The notes under the pieces: model-generated | Databases searched by the model: none | What the model was told of the DNA's origin: nothing | Seen by the model: only the letters and a program-made list of their open reading frames with translations | Program-made: the position numbers and the translations under genes | Sequence record: PP496443.1 | Direction: 5' to 3' (one strand) | Length of the DNA: 64,000 bases | Part shown: piece after piece, positions 26,997 to 55,472 of the stretch | Layout: each line of letters opens with the position of its first letter | Position numbering within the stretch: position 1 is the first letter of the stretch

Positions 26997-27060
26997 GAAA
27001 TAAAAACCCCCAAGCATTCTCGGACATAGCGCCGGTGGCTTGGGGGTTTTTATTTCTTAC
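26993..27060. terminator. Bidirectional terminator formed by a perfect 23-bp inverted repeat
   Basis: GTAAGAAATAAAAACCCCCAAGC (26993-27015) and its exact reverse complement (27038-27060), between convergent genes. Confidence 0.85.
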
Positions 27061-27503
27061 TTGACAGCTCCGCCGACAATTGCGGCAGCAGGGCTGTACT
27101 TCGCCATCGGGTCTTCCGGCAAGGGAACGTCTTTGCACTGGTCCTCCTTGAGGTCACGCCGGTAGTAGCACAGGAGTACCTTGTCCGACTTGATGTACCC
27201 CATGATCGATTGCAGATTGACACCCATGCTCAGGTAGTCCTGCCATGACAATGCCACGAACGTGGTCTTTCCGTCAGCCACTTGCTTCTCGAACTCATCG
27301 ATGTTCTTGTCGCTGACCACTTTCCACGTGACCGGCTTAAGGCTTAGCGGCTGCTGCCTTGGTGGATGGAACTGGGGGATTACTCCCGCATCTTCCGCCG
27401 GTTGCACATTGGAGGTCGTTGAGCACGCTGTTAGAAGCATTGTTAATACGACGCTCAACAAGGGTAGGCTTCTTACGTACGACTTCTTCAGTCTTTTTAT
27501 CAC
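27057..27503 (-). CDS. Outer-membrane spanin (Rz1-like lipoprotein)
   Basis: GTG 27503 with GGAG RBS; signal peptide ending in lipobox LTA-C; Pro-rich; overlaps the i-spanin 3' end in another frame. Confidence 0.8.
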   Translation of the reverse strand: MIKRLKKSYVRSLPLLSVVLTMLLTACSTTSNVQPAEDAGVIPQFHPPRQQPLSLKPVTWKVVSDKNIDEFEKQVADGKTTFVALSWQDYLSMGVNLQSIMGYIKSDKVLLCYYRRDLKEDQCKDVPLPEDPMAKYSPAAAIVGGAVK

Positions 27504-27840
27504 GGTGACTCTCCAATTTATCGGTAGCGGTTTCTTTCTCACTGCGGATGATGTTCAACTGCTCGTTGACCGCGTTGGCAAAGAGTTGGGTAGACGTGGC
27601 GGAAGTCTGTAGCCGGGAAATCTGGAACGCGGCTTGACCCAGTTGCAGGTCACGTTGCGCGATAGTTCCCGCCTGCTTTTGGTTTTCTTCCTGAAGATGA
27701 TACACCACGAGAATGCTGGCACCCAGTAGCGTTGCCAGAACAAGCGTAACCCCGATCATCACCTTTCCCAGCATTGAACCGATAAGGCTCTTGCTGCCGG
27801 TAACCACCGCTTCCTCCACGGTATCGATCACGTTACTCAT
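27337..27840 (-). CDS. Inner-membrane spanin (Rz-like)
   Basis: Single N-terminal TM followed by a coiled coil; partly overlaps the lipoprotein gene. Confidence 0.8.
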   Translation of the reverse strand: MSNVIDTVEEAVVTGSKSLIGSMLGKVMIGVTLVLATLLGASILVVYHLQEENQKQAGTIAQRDLQLGQAAFQISRLQTSATSTQLFANAVNEQLNIIRSEKETATDKLESHRDKKTEEVVRKKPTLVERRINNASNSVLNDLQCATGGRCGSNPPVPSTKAAAAKP

Positions 27841-28153
27841 TGGTAGGATCTCTAGTTATGATTACAGATGGGGGAGGGCCATTGTCGAACTTCCCGTTAG
27901 GTCCGGTTTCCACGTAGAACTTGAAATAGGCCGCAGCAGAGCCGACGGTGGCAGCTAAGATTGCAGCAGCCCCCAGCCCATCCATGGACGACGCCTTCAT
28001 CCAGTTGATAACATCAAATGACAGCTTCATCCAGAAGAACAGCAGCAGGATGGGGAAGATCCGCCATGCGACCATGATGTATTGCACGTGGTCCACGAAA
28101 GACCTGAACCACGGATTTAGTTGTTGCGGATCAGGTTTCTGTGACGAAGCCAT
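27833..28153 (-). CDS. Putative holin
   Basis: 106 aa with 2 TM segments (WRIFPILLLFFW..., AAAILAATVGSAAAYF), located between the amidase and the spanins. Confidence 0.65.
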   Translation of the reverse strand: MASSQKPDPQQLNPWFRSFVDHVQYIMVAWRIFPILLLFFWMKLSFDVINWMKASSMDGLGAAAILAATVGSAAAYFKFYVETGPNGKFDNGPPPSVIITRDPTNE

Positions 28154-28625
28154 ACGGCACCCCTTGTAGTGACTGCACTAGATCTTGTACGTCGAAGCAT
28201 GGACTCTCCGTCGGCGGCTGTCCTTCCACCTGGGGATGTTCCTTGGCCCCGCGTATCTCCGTGATGGGAATCCTGTACTTGCTGACCAAACTGTCCAGCA
28301 GATAACACAGCGACTCTTTCTGCACCGGCGTGAAGTTGTCCACCCACTCGCCTTTGTTGTTCAAGCCCCCGATCAAGCAGATACCCAAGTTGCCCTGAGC
28401 CTTGTTCGGGGTGTGCATGCCGATCGACCTGTCGTCCCGACCATTGATCACGTTCCCGTTTGGAAGAATCAGGTAGTGGAAGTCAATGAACAGTCCGGTG
28501 TGTGAACACTTGCGCTTCGGGTCTGACTGGCAGGACTTCATAGTCTGGGAGTTCAGGAATTCAAGCCATGAGAACCCCGTCATCTTTTCAGTCCCGGAGC
28601 AATGGATTGTTACCTCTGAGATCAT
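28131..28625 (-). CDS. N-acetylmuramoyl-L-alanine amidase homologue (T7 lysozyme/PGRP fold) with degenerate active site
   Basis: TIHCSGT, DFHYLILPNG..I.GRD, IGMH, LGICLIGG and FTPVQKESL align to T7 lysozyme, but GH is replaced by GA and KxCP by TESP. Confidence 0.85.
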   Translation of the reverse strand: MISEVTIHCSGTEKMTGFSWLEFLNSQTMKSCQSDPKRKCSHTGLFIDFHYLILPNGNVINGRDDRSIGMHTPNKAQGNLGICLIGGLNNKGEWVDNFTPVQKESLCYLLDSLVSKYRIPITEIRGAKEHPQVEGQPPTESPCFDVQDLVQSLQGVPYGFVTET

Positions 28626-29092
28626 TATAACTCCCCTTGTAGCAATTGGCGGGTGTTGCCAGTCTTCCCGGTCAAGCCAAGGTTCTTGGTGAAGAAGTCG
28701 AACAGGACTTTGCCCGTGACCGCGTGGTTCTTAGGCATAACTTCCACCCCGTTCTCGCGAAGGCACTCGGAGATGAGTTCGAAGCAGTACCACCTGTCCT
28801 TGGAGTGAATGTGCAGGAACCACAAGGCGATCCCGAGGAAGTCGTACTTACGGCCTCTGTTCCGTAGCAAGAATTCCTTGGCATCCATCTGTGGGAAGTC
28901 GAACACCATGATGGTGCGATCCATCTCATGCTCCGGGAACGTGTTGATGTCGAGGTGACCCCGAGCCATGTTCGAGTCCCAGACTTCGTCTCCCTGCACA
29001 ATGGACGCATGCGAAACAGGATAGCCTGTGCCGATACTGACAGCCATCGATGCGATATCGTAGACATAGGCTTGATGAAGAATAACGCGCAT
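28625..29092 (-). CDS. Permuted papain-like NlpC/P60 (YiiX/YaeF-like) enzyme
   Basis: SHASI (His), GRKYDFLG, and WYCFEL (Cys after His, the permuted order). Confidence 0.75.
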   Translation of the reverse strand: MRVILHQAYVYDIASMAVSIGTGYPVSHASIVQGDEVWDSNMARGHLDINTFPEHEMDRTIMVFDFPQMDAKEFLLRNRGRKYDFLGIALWFLHIHSKDRWYCFELISECLRENGVEVMPKNHAVTGKVLFDFFTKNLGLTGKTGNTRQLLQGEL

Positions 29093-29177
29093 GATCCTAA
29101 CCTTCCCTTTTGAACTGACTTACTGGTACCTGTATGATGTTTCGGATTGGGATAGGCAATCCTTTGCCTGTTCTTGC

Positions 29178-38254: not shown

Positions 38255-39262
38255 TCAGGCGAGGAATCTGTGTAAGCCCGAGGAATATTTGTTCAGGTAC
38301 ATGGTCATCACCTTATTGGACGCGGTGGTGGCTCGGTTACCTGATCGGTTAAACGACATATGCAACCAAGGTCGGTTCCCGTGTTCAAAGATGAACTGGT
38401 CATAATTGATGTTGTCTTTGACCCAATTGGCACGATCCCAATATTCTTGATTGCTAATGCCGGGCCACTGTACATCGATGGCTTGTCCCGTCTCATGCTG
38501 GGACCTACCATTCTGCTGTGTACGGAAACCGGAGTTGAAGGAGAAACCTGGGTAGGCGTCCCACAACGGTTCCAGTATATGCTCGGCCAATGCCTTGAGG
38601 TTGCAAACTATCTCCTGTTCCGTCAAGCCCCGTTGAGCCTTGATGGTGTGAGGGAAAGCAGTCTTGATCGATACGTTAGCCAGCGTAAACCTTGCAGATA
38701 GACGCAGCCCGTAATCCAGCGGTAGAGTAATCATGGCGCAGTCAGTGATAGGTGTAACTCGGTCCGGCGGGGGCACCTTGTTCTCTTCCTGTGCGGGTGT
38801 GTCTATTGGCGGTGGCGGTGAAGTCTGGGGTGCCGGTGGATAACTCTGCTGCGGAGTACCGGGACTGGTCTCGTATTCATCAGCGAAAGCGTCGTAACCG
38901 GCAGTCCGAATAAGCTTGGCTGCATTCTCAGGGCTGTTCTGATCCACCGGAATAATAGTGGCAGCGATAATCTCCACCTTACCCTTATCCGATGTACCGT
39001 CACCTACCAGCACAGTAGGTGAGCCTGTCATGGGTGCGTCATTGTCTTGGAACCCGTCACCCAGTCGGGCAACTGGTAGTCCGTTGGTGAACACCGTGGC
39101 ACTCCCAACTCTTTGCGAAGTAGGTCCGGGTGGGCCAATCCAGGTATCGCTGACCCGTACAACAGGGAAGCCATTGACCATGTGATTCGGGGATCCAGAC
39201 ACTGCCACCCGTTTAGCGTTTGACAAGTCTGGGCCTTGCCGGGCCACTGGTTTCAATGCCAT
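38255..39262 (-). CDS. PAAR spike-tip protein fused to a peptidase M15A (Zn peptidoglycan peptidase) domain
   Basis: N terminus: PVAR, PVVR..D, GSATVFTNGLPVARLGD. C terminus: NSGFR...SQHETGQAID...WLHMS (M15 HxxxxAxD and WxH). Confidence 0.85.
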   Translation of the reverse strand: MALKPVARQGPDLSNAKRVAVSGSPNHMVNGFPVVRVSDTWIGPPGPTSQRVGSATVFTNGLPVARLGDGFQDNDAPMTGSPTVLVGDGTSDKGKVEIIAATIIPVDQNSPENAAKLIRTAGYDAFADEYETSPGTPQQSYPPAPQTSPPPPIDTPAQEENKVPPPDRVTPITDCAMITLPLDYGLRLSARFTLANVSIKTAFPHTIKAQRGLTEQEIVCNLKALAEHILEPLWDAYPGFSFNSGFRTQQNGRSQHETGQAIDVQWPGISNQEYWDRANWVKDNINYDQFIFEHGNRPWLHMSFNRSGNRATTASNKVMTMYLNKYSSGLHRFLA

Positions 39263-43261: not shown

Positions 43262-46200
43262 TTAGAAGGATGAATTGTTGACCATCATCACCATAATGTC
43301 ATCGATGTTCTTGGCCGCTTTGGTCGTACCATTACCAGAGTTGCTGCCCCCACCACCGGATTGAACCACTTGTGGTGCAGGTTGCTCTTTAACCGCATTG
43401 GTGGTACGGTCCTGTGTCTGAATGAGTGCTGCCGTCTGTGCAGTCTGCAACTGCGACTTGCTCTCATTGAGATTGCTGCGTGCGGAACCAACGTCCTGCA
43501 GGTTGCTGTTGGCTGCACTCAGGGACTTGAACTCACCTGTGACAAGTGGTGCCGAAGATTCTATTGGCTTGATCATCGACAGGCGTTGTGATGGTTCGGT
43601 CAGGACACCTTTGCTAACCTGGGGGTCCAGCACCACTGCCGGATCGGTAGGCTTGCTCTGGGTGATAGGAACCGGACCCGTAATGCCTTTGGTTGCCGAC
43701 ATTGGCTGATTAGCCGCAGGCGTGGACACAGTGGTGGCTGGCAGCGGAGTAATGCCTGGAATGAATGGCGTGGTAGGTGCAGCGTCGCCTTTAACCGGTA
43801 CGTCGGTAGCCGGGCCAGCCTTGCCGATAGCCAACGGAGTTACTACCTTGCCGTTGGTGTCTACCTTAGGTACAGTCATGGACGTACTGATCGCAGCATC
43901 CACTTTGTTCTTCATGTCCTTGCTGTACTTCTGGTTGTTCTCCGTACCGTTCCAGGCGTCAAGCATTTCGATGTCGGAGATCTGACCTTGGTAGCCTTCC
44001 TGACGGAACACTGCCTTGGCAATCGCCATCATCGTCGGCTGGTCGTTAGGATCCAGCTTCTGGTTTGGATCGATACCGGTTTCCTTCGAGACGGCCGTGA
44101 CATAGCCACTGGTATCGTTCTCGTTCGGCGGTGTCAGCTTGTTGACCAACTGCTTCAAGGTCATGCCTTCCGCAGACACGTGCTTGCGCGCCAGCTTGAA
44201 CCAAGCTCTTGCACCGTGCACAACGGTATCGAACTTCTCGAATCCACCTTCCTGACCGATTTCCCCTACCCACTGGTTCTTGTCGCTGGCCCGGATGTTA
44301 CCTGGGTTGAAGTTCCGGGTTGCCAGTGTGGCTTGGCCCTTGAGAGGTCCAGAACCGGAGCCCTGATACGACACACTCTGATCCAGCGTACCCGGCTGCG
44401 GCAGAACAGGGATGGCTTGACCCTTGATGTTCGGCGACGCACTGAAATCTTGGGCAGGGCTGGATACGGACTGTTCTTTGTCGAACCAGTTCATCGGGTT
44501 GATGCGGGTAGCCAGATCCTTGGCTTTCTGCACCATATCTGCAATACGGTTCGGGTTGCTGAAGAAGTCGATGGCCGCACCGATGGCAATACCCGTCGGG
44601 CCAAAGATTGCACCCTTGAGTCCACCTTCACCGAGGTAGTCCTTAGCGGTGTCCAGCATGTTCGTGCCGAGCTTGGTCACAGAGTCCAGTGTACCCGATG
44701 CTAGATCCTGTACCGACTTCCAGCCTTCCGTACCCCACGTTGTGACAGTATCCCAGCCTTTGCTTAGGCCGGTCATCATGTCATTAGTGAAACCTTCCAT
44801 ATACTTCGATGCTTTGTCCAGGCCACCCGCTACAGTGTCAGTGACGAACTTGGATGCAGGTCCCAGTACATTGGTAACCTTGTCCAGTCCCGCATAGATG
44901 TCTTTGGTGTCGATCAAGCCGAACGACAACCCCGAGGCAATCGAGGACAGTGCCGCTTGAGACTTCTGACCGAACGTGGCTTCTTGACCCGGCTTCAACC
45001 CGGCAATGTCTGCTGCGTTGTTCCAACCGTCGAACCCATCGTAGGCCGCCATCGCAGCAATACCGATAGGACCTAAGAGTTTGCTGGCGCCGGAAAGCAG
45101 CCCTCGACCTGCCAGCCGTGCTACCTTACCCCCAGCTTTGGCTAACCCAACGCCTCGACTGGCAAGCTTACCTGCACGCGTGGCTGGCCTTGGCCGGGCC
45201 GACGGGACGTGGGGCTCACCAGCAGATGGACCAGTTGGATGCGGCGTAGAAGAGTTACGAGGACGAACCGATCCGGTGGCTGTATCCAGAACAGCGTCAA
45301 TGTTGTCATCTGTTTGGTCACGACCACGACGCAGGCCAACCAGACTACCAATAGCCCCGGCACCAGCACCTACAAAAGCTGACATCTTGCCGACGCGACC
45401 GGTAGCGAAGCGGCCAACACCTTTGGCAGCACGTCCCAGCCGACTGCCACCCCGAGCAGCACCTTCCGCTGTACCCCTTGCAGCTCCTTTGCGTGCAGCA
45501 CGGCCTGTGAGGATAGCCGAACCAGCGGCACCCAGACCACCCACGATACCGTCGGACAATCCTAGAGCCGCGTCGAAGTTACCCAAGCCTAGAGCATTGA
45601 GCAAGCCAGAGATTGCGGTGGACGCTACGCCTTTACCAGCAGCAACGATGCCGGGGTTGCGAACGAAGCGATCACTCAGCTTGTTCTTTTGCAGCCCAGA
45701 CTCTACGTCGCCGTGATCCAGCAACGACTCATCGAACTTCTCGTTCAACTCTTTCAGGTTGAATACGATCTTTTCGTCAGTAGTGTCAGACTGAACTTTC
45801 TGCAAGATGTTGGCAACTTTCTTGCTGGTGTGAGCATTCAGCTTACCGTCTGCCCGAAACGCTTTCTGCATAGCCACCACTTGCGCAGCGAATTGCGGAA
45901 TGGCAGACAGCTGTTTGATCACACCTTGCATCGCATCCTTGCGTTCATTCAGGCTACCGTTCTTCAACGTCTTGATAGCACCCGCGATGTCCGCATCTAC
46001 CGACTGGCGTTGGAATGCAACCTTCTCATATCCCTTGAGCATGGTTGCAATCTGAGCGTATTCCTTCTCCGAGATGTCGCTGTTATGCGACAGGAGCTTC
46101 TCGATGTCCTTTAACTGCGGGTTCTCTTTCAGCTGGCGCGACTGGCGCAGGAAGCCAACGGTCTCCCCCGCAATGGTGCTCCGGTAGTTCTTACCCAGTC

Positions 46201-46777
46201 GGCGGTCCGTGATACGATCAGTCATCTGGCTGACGACTTTGTTGCTGTCTACGTGCGCAATCGGAGCAACCGCTTTGAGATCGATAGCTACCGCTTTGGC
46301 AGACTCGACAACGGCGTGGGCCTGATCAGAGTCAACCGACTTCCGGTTCAACACATCTTCGTACAGCTTGCGCTCGGGACCGGACCGGAACTTCTGAAGA
46401 CGCTCCAGTGCATCCATCTGGTCCTGAATGGTCTTTTGCAGGGACTCATCACCCTGCTTCTGAGCCTTCTTCATCTGCTTCATCAGTTCCAGCTGGGTCT
46501 TGCTGTAATCCAGCAGATCCGACTGGTTGCTCACCGAGTCCAGAATGGTGGTCAACTGATCATGCAAGCCTTTACCCATGAGGAAGGTGGGCACCATGGA
46601 TTTCATGGCACGCTTGAGCACGTCAACGCCTTCCGTGAAAGCACTAGAGGCCAATGCGTTTGACCGCTCGGCCATCTTGAGTTGCTTTTCACTCATCTTT
46701 TCCCGATCAATGGAACTCGGGTCGATGTTGTTGCTCTTGAGGATGTCTAAGTACGTTTCATTGATTAGGGTCGGCAT
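43262..46777 (-). CDS. Tape measure protein with a lysozyme-like domain near the C terminus
   Basis: 1171 aa, helical and Ala/Gly-rich; contains RNFNPGNIR...FDTVVHGARA...PPNENDTSGYV...EG. Confidence 0.8.
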   Translation of the reverse strand: MPTLINETYLDILKSNNIDPSSIDREKMSEKQLKMAERSNALASSAFTEGVDVLKRAMKSMVPTFLMGKGLHDQLTTILDSVSNQSDLLDYSKTQLELMKQMKKAQKQGDESLQKTIQDQMDALERLQKFRSGPERKLYEDVLNRKSVDSDQAHAVVESAKAVAIDLKAVAPIAHVDSNKVVSQMTDRITDRRLGKNYRSTIAGETVGFLRQSRQLKENPQLKDIEKLLSHNSDISEKEYAQIATMLKGYEKVAFQRQSVDADIAGAIKTLKNGSLNERKDAMQGVIKQLSAIPQFAAQVVAMQKAFRADGKLNAHTSKKVANILQKVQSDTTDEKIVFNLKELNEKFDESLLDHGDVESGLQKNKLSDRFVRNPGIVAAGKGVASTAISGLLNALGLGNFDAALGLSDGIVGGLGAAGSAILTGRAARKGAARGTAEGAARGGSRLGRAAKGVGRFATGRVGKMSAFVGAGAGAIGSLVGLRRGRDQTDDNIDAVLDTATGSVRPRNSSTPHPTGPSAGEPHVPSARPRPATRAGKLASRGVGLAKAGGKVARLAGRGLLSGASKLLGPIGIAAMAAYDGFDGWNNAADIAGLKPGQEATFGQKSQAALSSIASGLSFGLIDTKDIYAGLDKVTNVLGPASKFVTDTVAGGLDKASKYMEGFTNDMMTGLSKGWDTVTTWGTEGWKSVQDLASGTLDSVTKLGTNMLDTAKDYLGEGGLKGAIFGPTGIAIGAAIDFFSNPNRIADMVQKAKDLATRINPMNWFDKEQSVSSPAQDFSASPNIKGQAIPVLPQPGTLDQSVSYQGSGSGPLKGQATLATRNFNPGNIRASDKNQWVGEIGQEGGFEKFDTVVHGARAWFKLARKHVSAEGMTLKQLVNKLTPPNENDTSGYVTAVSKETGIDPNQKLDPNDQPTMMAIAKAVFRQEGYQGQISDIEMLDAWNGTENNQKYSKDMKNKVDAAISTSMTVPKVDTNGKVVTPLAIGKAGPATDVPVKGDAAPTTPFIPGITPLPATTVSTPAANQPMSATKGITGPVPITQSKPTDPAVVLDPQVSKGVLTEPSQRLSMIKPIESSAPLVTGEFKSLSAANSNLQDVGSARSNLNESKSQLQTAQTAALIQTQDRTTNAVKEQPAPQVVQSGGGGSNSGNGTTKAAKNIDDIMVMMVNNSSF

Positions 46778-52700: not shown

Positions 52701-55472
52701 CTTGTCCGGCTGGCGCTGACCCGACACAATGGGTCGGATCTGGTGAGCCAGTGCGGAGAAGTCGGAACGGATGAACGGAACCGGTGACACTTCCGTCTCG
52801 TCGTTGACCTTGACCGGGTTCAGCGAATACTTCGCCTGCTTGGCCGCTACTTGGGACTTCAGTTCATCCTTGGCTGACTGGTCTGCATACTTCGCCATGG
52901 CAAAGATCGAAGCAACACCCTGCATACGACTGGTGACCGACAACACGTTACTGGTGCCGATGGCCTTCGGATCGCTGAGGATCTTGAACAACGCGTCCGT
53001 ACCGTCTTGCATGGCTTCGACCGCAATACGGCCAATGCCTCGGAGCATAGGGATATCGGAATCAGCGGTCAGGTGGCTGATGCGCAAATCCTTGTATACC
53101 TCTTCGAACGGGTAATCGTTCGTCGCGATGTCCCGATCAACCAGACGCTTCGCCAACGATTGAATCGATGCCAGAACTTCGTGGATCGTTGGGTTGCCGC
53201 CCGCAGGGAACAGGAACTCTTGAACGCTTTCCCCTAGAACGTCGGTTACCGCCGGAGGAACCTCGAAGTCGCTCTCATTGAAATAGTCAGTAACCTTCTT
53301 GCCCTTGTAGTTCAGCCACGCCGTCAGCGAGTTACGCAGATAGCCGAACGACAGTGCCTTGGGGTTTACTTTCTCTTCCATCGACTTCTGGTATTCCATG
53401 ACGCTGGCCGGGGAATAAGCCGAGACATCATACGTGACCAGTCCACCAGACGAAGTGGTGTAGCTGAGGATGTCCGCACCCCAGTCAGTGAAGATGTAGT
53501 AGGAGCGTAGACGGCCTTGAGCGAATTGCTTGATAACCAGATTATCCGTCTTGGCGTTGTCCGGGATCATGTACTGGTTCTGGATGCTGATCTCAGGAGT
53601 TTCCTGCCCCTCAACCTCTTTGAACTTCGCTTTGACGCCACCCATGCCCACGTCTTGGCGGGTGTATTCGTTGTCTGCGAAGGCACCGCGATACGAATCC
53701 TCGATGGCCTTCTCGTACTGCGCAACGATCTGTGGATCAGCGGTGGGCACGAACACCAGGTCAGCATCGGGACCAACCATCATCTGGTCACCGTTCAAAC
53801 GCGAACGCTGCGGCATTGCGCGGGTATCTGCGATTGCCTTGCCCACGGCACGATAGAACGATGCATCTGTCTTGGCGAACGAGTACTGCGCGTCAGTCAT
53901 CTGATACGCCCACTCAGCCACGTCAACCGGGGCGGGTGGAGAGTGCTGAGTCACGAACGCAGCCACGTCTTCCGAGATAGTGAACTCGGAGAAAGCAACA
54001 ACCTCGGCGTCACCTGCCTCACCGATGTTAGACAGACGACACATGAACGAGCGGGACTTCAGACGCGCCATCGCATCCTTGTAGTCCGCCTTGTCTACCA
54101 CGTCAGTCTGCAGTGACGGTGGCACTGGCATCTTGTTGGACGTCAACCAGCCATTGAGGCGGGTCATCGGCGTGTTTTCCAGAAGCCAGTTGATGAAGTC
54201 AACCGGTGCCTTTGGCATGGTTGGTTCTTCCGGCGCGCCCGCAGTCAGGTTGCCGTCCAGCCCCCGGTACGCATGGTTCCAGTTCTTGAGCAGGCGCTCC
54301 AGAATCTTGCCGCCGACTTCCTGCCGCACTTTTTCAAAGGACGGTTTGTCTTCCTTCGAATAGGCGAAGATGATCTTGGCGACCATGCTCTCGTTGACAT
54401 CAGACCAGTTGTTGTCGTAGTCCAGATCTTCGATGCGATACTTGCGCAGCACATCTAGCTGTTGCTGGTTGGTGAAGCTGCAATACATCACGTTCTCACC
54501 AAGGGTACGACGCACGTACGGCATCTTACCGGCGGTGCCCGTGCCATTGAGGAAGCTTACCTCATTGGTGCTTTGTACGCCTGCATCACCACGGGGTGGT
54601 GATACTTCGATCAGCAGGTTGAGCCCACCAACCAGTTCCTTCAACCCATCTTTCTCGAAGGCGAAGTCGTTCTCGCCCATCAAGATTTCCTTGTCGATGA
54701 ACGGACTGTTCAACGCAGATTTGAAGTTGACAGGAATGCGCAACCGCAGCTGGCGAGTCATGTCGTCCAACGCCAGCGGATCTTCCATGAACTTGCCCAG
54801 TGCAGTCTTGAGCAGTTCCAGTTGGCTGGTCATCAGTGCGTCGACCTTGGTCTGCATCCGGCTACGCTCGTCCAGCGGCAGATACACCATGGCATTTTGC
54901 AGGATCTTAACACGCGGGACAACGTAGGCCATGTCGATTCTGCTTTCGACGCAAATGCCGATTGCGTCAAGCATCTCAGGGACCGAGAATCCGGGAATGC
55001 GGGACTCTTTGACGTTGCTGCCCATGGCCGGGATAGCCAGCGTGAAGTCACCTCGACCATTCGCCGTCACCTTGGTATACGGCGCCAGCGTACGCATGCC
55101 TTCCGACATCTCGTCCCACTTATCAGCCTTGATCGTAGCACTGTTGGCACGGAAGGAGGCCGGAGGGTTAACGCTGTAGTCCTTGAACTCCAGGCTTTCT
55201 TTCATGTCCTGCAACAGACGCTTGCCATTGTCGAACAACTTCGGCAGCTCGGTCTCGAACAAGTTCGGTACCTTGGACAGTTCGTCCATCAGCGATGCGC
55301 CGCCCACGGACAGAACCGCGTACGCCATGCTGTGCAGGTCACCAAGCTTGTAGTCGTACGTTGCTTCGTAGTCTTCAGGCTCTTCAACCGGCTCGGCCAA
55401 TGGTGCTGCCAGCGAGCGTAAGCGTTCCGTCTCTTCCGGGGCGCGACTACGCCGTTTTGATTTCTTGCTCAT
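49722..55472 (-). CDS. Giant SNF2-family (SF2) helicase/translocase
   Basis: VDAGGGKT (I), MMCPKNL (Ia), SMDESQ (II), TTGT (III), KVLIFC (IV), LNTGHNFQ (V), EQGQSRLNR (VI). Start at ATG 55472 (AAGGTG RBS). Confidence 0.88.
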   Translation of the reverse strand: MSKKSKRRSRAPEETERLRSLAAPLAEPVEEPEDYEATYDYKLGDLHSMAYAVLSVGGASLMDELSKVPNLFETELPKLFDNGKRLLQDMKESLEFKDYSVNPPASFRANSATIKADKWDEMSEGMRTLAPYTKVTANGRGDFTLAIPAMGSNVKESRIPGFSVPEMLDAIGICVESRIDMAYVVPRVKILQNAMVYLPLDERSRMQTKVDALMTSQLELLKTALGKFMEDPLALDDMTRQLRLRIPVNFKSALNSPFIDKEILMGENDFAFEKDGLKELVGGLNLLIEVSPPRGDAGVQSTNEVSFLNGTGTAGKMPYVRRTLGENVMYCSFTNQQQLDVLRKYRIEDLDYDNNWSDVNESMVAKIIFAYSKEDKPSFEKVRQEVGGKILERLLKNWNHAYRGLDGNLTAGAPEEPTMPKAPVDFINWLLENTPMTRLNGWLTSNKMPVPPSLQTDVVDKADYKDAMARLKSRSFMCRLSNIGEAGDAEVVAFSEFTISEDVAAFVTQHSPPAPVDVAEWAYQMTDAQYSFAKTDASFYRAVGKAIADTRAMPQRSRLNGDQMMVGPDADLVFVPTADPQIVAQYEKAIEDSYRGAFADNEYTRQDVGMGGVKAKFKEVEGQETPEISIQNQYMIPDNAKTDNLVIKQFAQGRLRSYYIFTDWGADILSYTTSSGGLVTYDVSAYSPASVMEYQKSMEEKVNPKALSFGYLRNSLTAWLNYKGKKVTDYFNESDFEVPPAVTDVLGESVQEFLFPAGGNPTIHEVLASIQSLAKRLVDRDIATNDYPFEEVYKDLRISHLTADSDIPMLRGIGRIAVEAMQDGTDALFKILSDPKAIGTSNVLSVTSRMQGVASIFAMAKYADQSAKDELKSQVAAKQAKYSLNPVKVNDETEVSPVPFIRSDFSALAHQIRPIVSGQRQPDKKVDHVDAGGGKTLMNVLDCLYTLGQYYERGDLKGQQQKRPLMMCPKNLIKNYIEDITYLTQGSVNVIVLSTDVINRYGHDYMYNLIYNAPVNTLVLCDFDFPKNGQYSIQYGNTDLILSNNSELMRRFEWIYLSMDESQYLANLDSARSSSVRAQATLSDNLRQTTGTYVHGQLTDAAGQFSIMSPSTFGSKKDFIERYAAETFQGKPLSWKNNAERDVRTQMNSAADYVRVSRREWAALLPAATETFHKVSLSKKQMAVYQDILNDAVEAIMADADLMKKLKASDEGEENVANIEMLLRPYLQRLEMFISAPAHDKVGDKVLQGSDRISPKAKEIIRLFDEHSRDKTNGKVLIFCAYVASAQALHASLPPDLQKKVILYYAADKDKLLPKFEKDDSIIGLIGVETSLNTGHNFQFVNRLISTDSVWSPGEFEQGQSRLNRPDPKNKYGARSKIFFDRIIADGTIDVTKTARMMSKLLTMVRFQASDARYDKLPNLPLVSMTLDSIMDANKFGSEDDQGSLFSYVDAYGQYTKIRRDEYADFLKTYDGPTKAKEIPTAGNLPGSALITVPYTSNMQLPFTDALGIIPVSDWLADNDLTADEADMKGLQVHTEYGDGEVISSGKNTLKVKIKEIGTVSVNKLAVFVILKPNKVPVRQRLAEMVGMPERATQYSTPESDPVVEEPEEDDTEEPEDAPAPIPDAPVKKAVVERNRDLDGEIYVYPGVLNNMIQLALDREDPDVTDKMATQLGFRETGKFIYAIVPTYRALSSVIDKLKENFEVQPRYLKDLESALAAFTQGKRRLLNFEAALDTDVRNFHLDRKRAVPKGELRPYVMFYEGECWILVDMTKQPSAVQVRRKVIVPTVKWESSDSEWFILSNSKAEAKAELDAIVRSGVSVGNYDEVMETIKSLTLRTKKRTPAAKVNTEVTGKTIRRFQTKSGTRFIALVKTKAGYVLETQDGNTDLGKISEAAAGRALAKAVKAETKWKLREVA

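Follow-up and report, generated by a model that had tools for sequence, protein, structure and literature searches.

A T7-lysozyme-like protein in the lysis cassette of Pseudomonas phage vB_PpuM-Lauda is very probably a pseudo-amidase kept under selection

The window analysed here is a stretch of 64,000 nucleotides (nt) of the genome of Pseudomonas phage vB_PpuM-Lauda (PP496443.1; 201,030 bp; host P. putida), and a position in it equals the coordinate in the record minus 62,000. On its minus strand, the window carries a compact lysis cassette in which an open reading frame (ORF) at 28131..28625, 100% identical to Lauda_00113 and labelled "amidase" in GenBank, lies between a holin-like gene and the gene of a weakly papain-like protein. 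A sequence-only reading of this DNA had proposed that the product, which takes the place of the endolysin in the cassette, is catalytically dead. The gene and the codons on which this claim turns are the following; the Thr139, Ser141 and Cys143 codons were read straight from the window DNA.

28131..28625, minus strand: putative pseudo-amidase gene Lauda_00113, 164 amino acids (aa), T7-lysozyme/Amidase_2 fold
28602..28604, minus strand: His8 codon, at the T7 His17 position; the sole zinc ligand retained, Arg in the orthologue P0002
28479..28481, minus strand: Phe49 codon, where the catalytic Tyr is found in homologues (Tyr46 in T7, Tyr78 in PGRP-LB, Tyr58 in Ts2631)
28245..28247, minus strand: Ala127 codon, at the position of the T7 zinc ligand His122
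28209..28211, minus strand: Thr139 codon, at the T7 Lys128 position
28203..28205, minus strand: Ser141 codon, at the position of the T7 zinc ligand Cys130 (Asp in AmpD)
28197..28199, minus strand: Cys143 codon, an ancestral residue (second Cys in CPCFD)

The family assignment of Lauda_00113, the only Amidase_2 gene in the PP496443.1 record, is consistent across methods. The protein matches Pfam Amidase_2 (PF01510; E=1.7e-7, 32 bits against a curated cut-off of 26) and phrog_822 "amidase" (E=2.8e-23), and its best sequence match is T7 lysozyme (1lba; E=4.9e-15), with which BLASTP finds 36% identity across 103 aa. An AlphaFold2 model built on a 75-sequence alignment has a mean predicted local distance difference test (pLDDT) score of 85.7, and the top Foldseek match of this model in the PDB is again 1lba (E=3.4e-10, TM 0.70/0.78), followed by amidase endolysins, PGRPs and AmpD. 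Neither a signal peptide nor a transmembrane segment was detected in Lauda_00113; it contains no hydrophobic segment at all (top 19-residue Kyte-Doolittle mean 0.71), so that a holin would be needed for the protein to reach the wall. Counterparts are present in eight sister phages at 94.5–99.4% identity; these phages belong to genus cluster G3 of the CEPEST collection, and the paper that presents it (PMC7616413) is silent on lysis genes. A word-index protein search with Lauda_00113 and its neighbour Lauda_00114 yielded no match beyond the cluster of each protein.

The active site was compared in alignments with T7 gp3.5 and either 17 or 137 homologues, the 137 being representatives of at most 260 aa, and the column counts given here refer to the resulting 138 aligned sequences. 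The alignments bear out the claim that the first zinc ligand is kept, that the second His and the Cys are lost, and that the catalytic Tyr is replaced by Phe: His8, Ala127, Ser141 and Phe49 occupy columns that contain His in 119, His in 127, Cys in 128 and Tyr in 135 sequences, respectively, a pattern well beyond chance. The catalytic Tyr is missing only from Lauda_00113, P0002 and one gapped sequence, and three further near-invariant residues of the family are replaced in Lauda_00113, namely, His27 by Gln, Gly48 by Asp and Asn76 by Ala.

Mutants equivalent to the natural changes in Lauda_00113 have been characterized in two homologues. In the Ts2631 endolysin, Y58F, H131N and C139S leave 10%, 3% and 12% of the activity, respectively (PMC4573324), and in Drosophila PGRP-LB, Y78F cleaves none of the substrates but continues to bind peptidoglycan, and C160S loses the zinc (PMC8124813). 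Lauda_00113 combines all three changes, at the Tyr, His and Cys positions, that cripple its homologues singly and, given that the equivalent mutants are crippled, we consider it very probable, from the mutants and the sequence comparison, that the protein lacks zinc-amidase activity. Not every residue adduced for this claim carries weight. Thr139 does occupy the Lys128 position, but the change from Lys to Thr is not diagnostic because the column contains Lys in 100 and Thr in 12–13 sequences and because the active Ts2631 endolysin natively carries Thr there (PMC4573324). Two potential substitutes were rejected. Cys143, in the SPCF segment, which the sequence-only reading had named as a possible alternative ligand, is ancestral and does not compensate, a Cys being present there in 76 of the 137 homologues, beside the true ligand Cys (CPCFD), and Tyr51, considered as a migrated catalytic Tyr, is the commonest, ancestral residue of its column. 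The other alternative ligand proposed, His130 (KEHP), is specific to the Lauda lineage, in a column where all other homologues carry hydrophobic residues, three residues past the lost His, and might be a new ligand.

The reading frame of Lauda_00113 is intact, as had been noted, and it evolves as a functional gene does. The pairwise ratios of nonsynonymous to synonymous substitution rates (dN/dS) are 0.11 against Peetri, 0.05 against Voja-6, 0.07 against Illi-2 and 0.02 against Aura, values comparable to those for the holin, Rz and C92-like genes nearby (0–0.16). The 13 distinct amino-acid differences in these comparisons all spare residues 8, 49, 127, 130, 139, 141 and 143. In a quick maximum-likelihood tree, which is indicative only, Lauda_00113 and P0002 form a clade (98 in the Shimodaira-Hasegawa-like approximate likelihood ratio test, SH-aLRT) that is nested among canonical amidases, and its stem, at 2.66 substitutions per site, is the longest of all internal branches. 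Because dN/dS is as low as 0.02–0.11, Lauda_00113 is, as judged from these comparisons, a selected, functional protein that changed fast once and not a decaying relic.

P0002 (138 aa) is the closest relative of Lauda_00113 among 1.84 billion representative proteins (E=1.9e-22; 42–50% identity depending on the aligner), all other relatives showing at most 40% identity over comparable spans. It is the shorter of the two, with three internal deletions, and its catalytic site is even more extensively degraded: Arg, His and Glu are found at the T7 His17, Tyr46 and His122 positions, and the whole KxCPCFD segment is deleted, so that every zinc ligand is gone, along with the equivalents of His130 and Cys143. 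On the question of whether orthologues share the substitutions, already posed from the sequence of the window, all three zinc ligands and the Tyr are missing in P0002, and the key residues are invariant in the sister phages. With three crippling substitutions, an orthologue without any zinc ligand and a long stem branch inside the canonical amidases, the claim of a catalytically dead protein is well supported. The known clade is limited to nine sister phages and a single Logan contig: a search of IMG/VR with a two-sequence alignment retrieved no further members, and a degenerate DNA pattern for HYL[IV]LPNG..RDDR had no match in viral contigs or metagenome contigs. By contrast with P0002, the canonical relative P0004 keeps all catalytic residues, and its gene directly follows a large tail-fibre-like gene; both its residues and its position fit an ancestral endolysin role.

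Two sequence motifs that are specific to this clade are shared by Lauda_00113 and P0002. C40-x-H42 (28500-28508) is located in an insert just ahead of the old active-site strand, and L-x-GVPYG (residues 154-159, 28149-28166) in the C-terminal tail; around the former, P0002 contains four His and one Cys inside 12 residues. From the sequences, a new site for a metal or for binding could be made up of C40-x-H42 and His50, which is invariant.

The gene encoding P0002 is located on a 3.2-kb metagenomic contig (L010; Logan ERR13715691) in which the gene order is that of Lauda, that is, amidase-like, holin-like, Rz-like and Rz1-like. The holin-like gene is 65% identical to that of Lauda and overlaps the 3' end of the amidase-like gene by 23 nt in both phages; the identity is 39% for the Rz-like and 64% for the Rz1-like gene. 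Upstream of the pseudo-amidase, the contig carries a tail-fibre assembly gene and a gene for a DUF7338 membrane protein, neither of which has a counterpart anywhere in Lauda; the DUF7338 protein (phrog_2143; L010:1046-1744), which has a hydrophobic N-terminus, is encoded directly upstream of P0002. No counterpart of the papain-like Lauda_00114 was found in the L010 cassette and, given the otherwise shared gene order, the conserved unit therefore consists of the pseudo-amidase, the holin, Rz and Rz1. The five Lauda genes are tightly packed between 29092 and 27057 and overlap one another (TAATG, 23 nt and 8 nt), and the neighbours of the pseudo-amidase are as follows.

28625..29092, minus strand: Lauda_00114, weakly papain-like (Peptidase_C92), 155 aa
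27833..28153, minus strand: holin-like protein, 106 aa, hydrophobic segments at about 24-46 and about 59-77; the first 23 nt of the gene are shared with the 3' end of the pseudo-amidase gene
27337..27840, minus strand: i-spanin, Rz-like (phrog_739, E=5e-16); overlaps the holin stop
27057..27542, minus strand: o-spanin, Rz1-like (phrog_812, E=1e-19); carries an LLTAC lipobox and, in a different frame, overlaps the 3' portion of the i-spanin gene
27009..27024, minus strand: terminator-like hairpin with a T run, just past the o-spanin stop

The TAA stop of Lauda_00114 and the ATG of the pseudo-amidase gene overlap (TAATG), with a GGGGAG Shine-Dalgarno sequence within the 3' end of Lauda_00114. 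The placement of the pseudo-amidase between the holin and this gene is as described in the sequence-only reading, but the assignment of the neighbour as a permuted papain enzyme is weak. The match to Pfam Peptidase_C92 (E=0.004) is under the Pfam cut-off, that to PDB 3kw0 has E=0.54, a profile search of the PDB returned nothing meaningful, and the fold predicted from a 3-sequence alignment (mean pLDDT 50.6) is unusable. PF05708 appears in one ESM Atlas cluster, ranked 13th, and His28 and Cys103 of Lauda_00114 are kept in its sole distant homologue, from Acinetobacter phage ME3. The phrog_1128 label of this gene, "enoyl-CoA hydratase-like", was not taken up.

A better candidate for the wall-cutting enzyme is encoded about 35 kb from the pseudo-amidase, outside the window. 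Lauda_00067 (record 54640..55314; L007:4640-5314, minus strand) is a GH19 endolysin by its matches to phrog_181 endolysin (E=5e-64) and to GH19-type lysin structures (9eoi, 5e-46; 8p8e, 5e-40; SPN1S endolysin 4ok7, 3.6e-25), and its HES...E...NYS catalytic region aligns with the solved lysins. It is 97.8–100% conserved across all nine sister phages and belongs to a family of 603 phage records, 409 of them from Pseudomonas phages, that includes the R2-pyocin lytic enzyme type. On sequence evidence, Lauda_00067 is likely the true endolysin and the best candidate, ahead of the weakly supported Lauda_00114. The earlier suggestion that another hydrolase performs lysis finds support in this form, but not in the form that points to the neighbouring gene, Lauda_00114 being weakly assigned and absent from the orthologous cassette. 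The proteins annotated as "tail lysozyme" and a 1171-aa "endolysin" contain no peptidoglycan-hydrolase Pfam domain at E<=0.001, the latter (43262-46777, minus strand) having no Pfam match whatever at this threshold. A PAAR protein (38255-39262, minus strand) shows the PAAR motif only, at the same threshold. Lauda_00067 stands alone on the minus strand amid plus-strand genes, distant from the holin and the spanins, and the 98-aa gene upstream of and overlapping it has neither a transmembrane segment nor an assigned family.

Among known systems, T7 lysozyme (gp3.5; 1LBA/1ARO) resembles Lauda_00113 in size, single-domain architecture, lack of an export signal and possession of the first zinc-ligand His, but its Tyr46, His122 and Cys130 are Phe, Ala and Ser in Lauda_00113, and its gene is located among DNA-metabolism genes rather than in a holin-spanin cassette. 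The non-catalytic face of T7 lysozyme binds T7 RNA polymerase. A search of PP496443.1 for T7-type RNA polymerase (PF00940) gave no match, a weak negative considering that the control genomes gave none either; the annotation of the record lists a sigma factor alone. The equivalents of T7 His122 and Cys130 are also lost in four other representative homologues (P0014, P0031, P0074 and P0135). In P0031 (L019:5001-5465) and P0074 (L020:3896-4432), His17 and Tyr46 are kept, and the other two ligands are replaced by Tyr/Ser and Ile/Asn. Both genes occupy the gene-3.5 position of T7-like metagenomic contigs, that of P0031 beside phage RNA polymerase and replication genes, and the two proteins are probably RNA-polymerase-inhibitor-only variants. 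Like Lauda_00113, they are intact phage T7-lysozyme-like proteins minus two zinc ligands; unlike it, they keep the Tyr at the catalytic position, and the setting of P0031 fits an RNA polymerase inhibitor rather than a lysis cassette. Because P0014 and P0031 are placed apart from the clade of Lauda_00113 and P0002 in the quick tree, from which P0074 was left out, their zinc-site losses look independent of that in the Lauda clade.

The analogy to the non-catalytic animal PGRPs (PGRP-SA, -SD, -LC and -LE), drawn in the sequence-only reading, holds for the shared fold and for the Cys-to-Ser type of zinc-site loss, but not as kinship: the sequence similarity is distant (PGRP-SD, E=0.0056), Lauda_00113 resembles phage T7-lysozyme-like amidases far more closely, and its loss appears convergent, independent and wider, with the catalytic Tyr and the second His gone too. 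These PGRPs remain functional as binders, not enzymes (PMC8124813). Non-catalytic Amidase_2/PGRP-fold proteins are already known, and Lauda_00113 would be a lysis-cassette variant of them. The retention of a catalytically dead hydrolase homologue is further paralleled by EnvC and NlpD. These degenerate LytM factors of bacterial division, dead peptidoglycan-hydrolase homologues kept as hydrolase regulators, activate Amidase_3 enzymes; their fold (M23/LytM) is a different one. In Gram-positive systems, a papain/CHAP-like cutter is combined with a non- or weakly cutting wall binder, as in PlyC (PlyCA+PlyCB) and in staphylococcal CHAP-Amidase_2-SH3b lysins, the amidase of which is nearly silent. 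The translational coupling of Lauda_00114 and Lauda_00113 is reminiscent of such lysins; however, the papain-like label is weak and the gene is missing from the orthologous cassette.

The reading we tentatively prefer, at a probability of about 0.45, is that Lauda_00113 is a non-enzymatic binder of the wall or of muropeptides that assists or tunes lysis while the GH19 enzyme does the cutting. Under this scenario, the ancestor of Lauda_00113 would be a T7-lysozyme-type N-acetylmuramoyl-L-alanine amidase endolysin that lost zinc catalysis while the protein was kept, becoming, with the holin, the i-spanin and the o-spanin, a constant component of a compact module for late lysis. Without an export signal, the protein would remain cytoplasmic up to the opening of the membrane by the holin, and would then bind peptidoglycan or muropeptides through the remnant of the substrate groove, like non-catalytic PGRPs and PGRP-LB Y78F, and so assist or tune the breakdown of the wall, in which the bonds would be cleaved by Lauda_00067, possibly aided by Lauda_00114. 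Both peptidoglycan binding and any helper role are inferred here by analogy, and several observations weigh against them. Asn76, conserved even in the non-catalytic PGRP-SD, is Ala in Lauda_00113 and, because several such groove residues have changed, canonical peptidoglycan binding is not assured from the sequence. P0002, known from one 3.2-kb metagenomic contig, might itself be degenerate. In the literature searched, we found neither a precedent for a helper role in Gram-negative phage lysis nor a description of a counterpart among pseudo-endolysins. A more far-reaching proposal, possible if somewhat improbable, is that the pseudo-amidase, holin, i-spanin and o-spanin genes form a mobile lysis module of otherwise unrelated phages in which the former endolysin would have become a dedicated non-enzymatic lysis factor, either a soluble, cytoplasmic regulator of the holin acting as an antiholin-like timer or the wall-binding subunit of a split lysin, with C40-x-H42 and L-x-GVPYG as a new functional surface.

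The same features are open to other explanations. By analogy to T7 lysozyme, Lauda_00113 might be a cytoplasmic protein-binding regulator that sets the time or the efficiency of lysis, its candidate partners being the cytoplasmic N-terminus of the holin, the coupled Lauda_00114 or the GH19 endolysin. Such a role, the main rival reading but one that we consider unlikely, would account for the synteny with the holin and the 23-nt overlap kept in two otherwise unrelated phages, for the TAATG coupling, and for clade motifs that lie outside the old active site, and the ligand-poor proteins at the gene-3.5 position of T7-like contigs indicate that the fold can persist for binding alone; yet Lauda_00114 is missing from the orthologous cassette, and the blank PF00940 search, for what a search blank in controls is worth, offers no polymerase as a target. 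An enzyme that still works, with a metal site rebuilt from His8, His130 and either Cys143 or Glu140, or by a metal-independent mechanism, is quite improbable. The gene occupies the classical endolysin slot beside the holin, His8 is retained, His130 is a lineage-specific gain three residues past the lost His, Cys143 lies two residues past the lost Cys, and all three are invariant among the sister phages. However, Cys143 and Tyr51 are both ancestral, the orthologue P0002 has none of these three residues, the invariant His27, Gly48 and Asn76 are lost as well, and the change from Tyr to Phe alone abolishes the activity of PGRP-LB and leaves 10% in Ts2631. Finally, the decayed catalytic residues, the shortened P0002 with its three internal deletions and the presence of a redundant GH19 endolysin could all be taken to mean that Lauda_00113 is a functionless relic of a former endolysin in the course of being lost, but this is very hard to reconcile with dN/dS values as low as those of the holin and spanin genes, a frame without disruption in nine phages as well as in a phage contig sharing only this cassette, and a confident fold model, and we regard it as highly improbable.

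The common annotation practice of calling an Amidase_2 gene beside a holin "the endolysin" is probably wrong in this case, and lysin mining in P. putida jumbo phages should take into account that the wall cutter is likely the GH19 gene about 35 kb away. Lauda_00113 provides a natural case of a hydrolase that apparently turned into a pseudoenzyme and is kept under selection by a lysis module. If it does set the timing of the holin, or directs another lysin to the wall, the holin-endolysin-spanin scheme would gain a new player, and if the far-reaching proposal above holds, phages of Gram-negative bacteria would have a new class of lysis-cassette component. More generally, the zinc site seems to have been lost several times independently among phage T7-lysozyme-like proteins, which in the T7-like contigs fits a role as an RNA polymerase inhibitor.

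The spanin genes are annotated inconsistently among these phages. The i-spanin ORF (27337-27840, minus strand) is not annotated as a coding sequence in the Lauda GenBank record, where the label "Rz-like spanin" is attached only to the o-spanin frame, at 27057..27440; in the sister phages, the i-spanin is annotated and the o-spanin is split differently. The true start of the o-spanin may lie further downstream than 27542. The hairpin at 27009..27024, found by a consensus scan alone, with a mean of 2.9 such sites in shuffled sequence, is likely the end of the cassette transcript. At the opposite end, a spacer of 85 nt (29093-29177, minus strand) separates the tail-fibre gene from Lauda_00114. 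A short hairpin (GGCAA-AGGA-TTGCC) and AAGGGAAGG, a strong ribosome-binding site, are found in this spacer, where processing or attenuation may take place ahead of the lysis genes.

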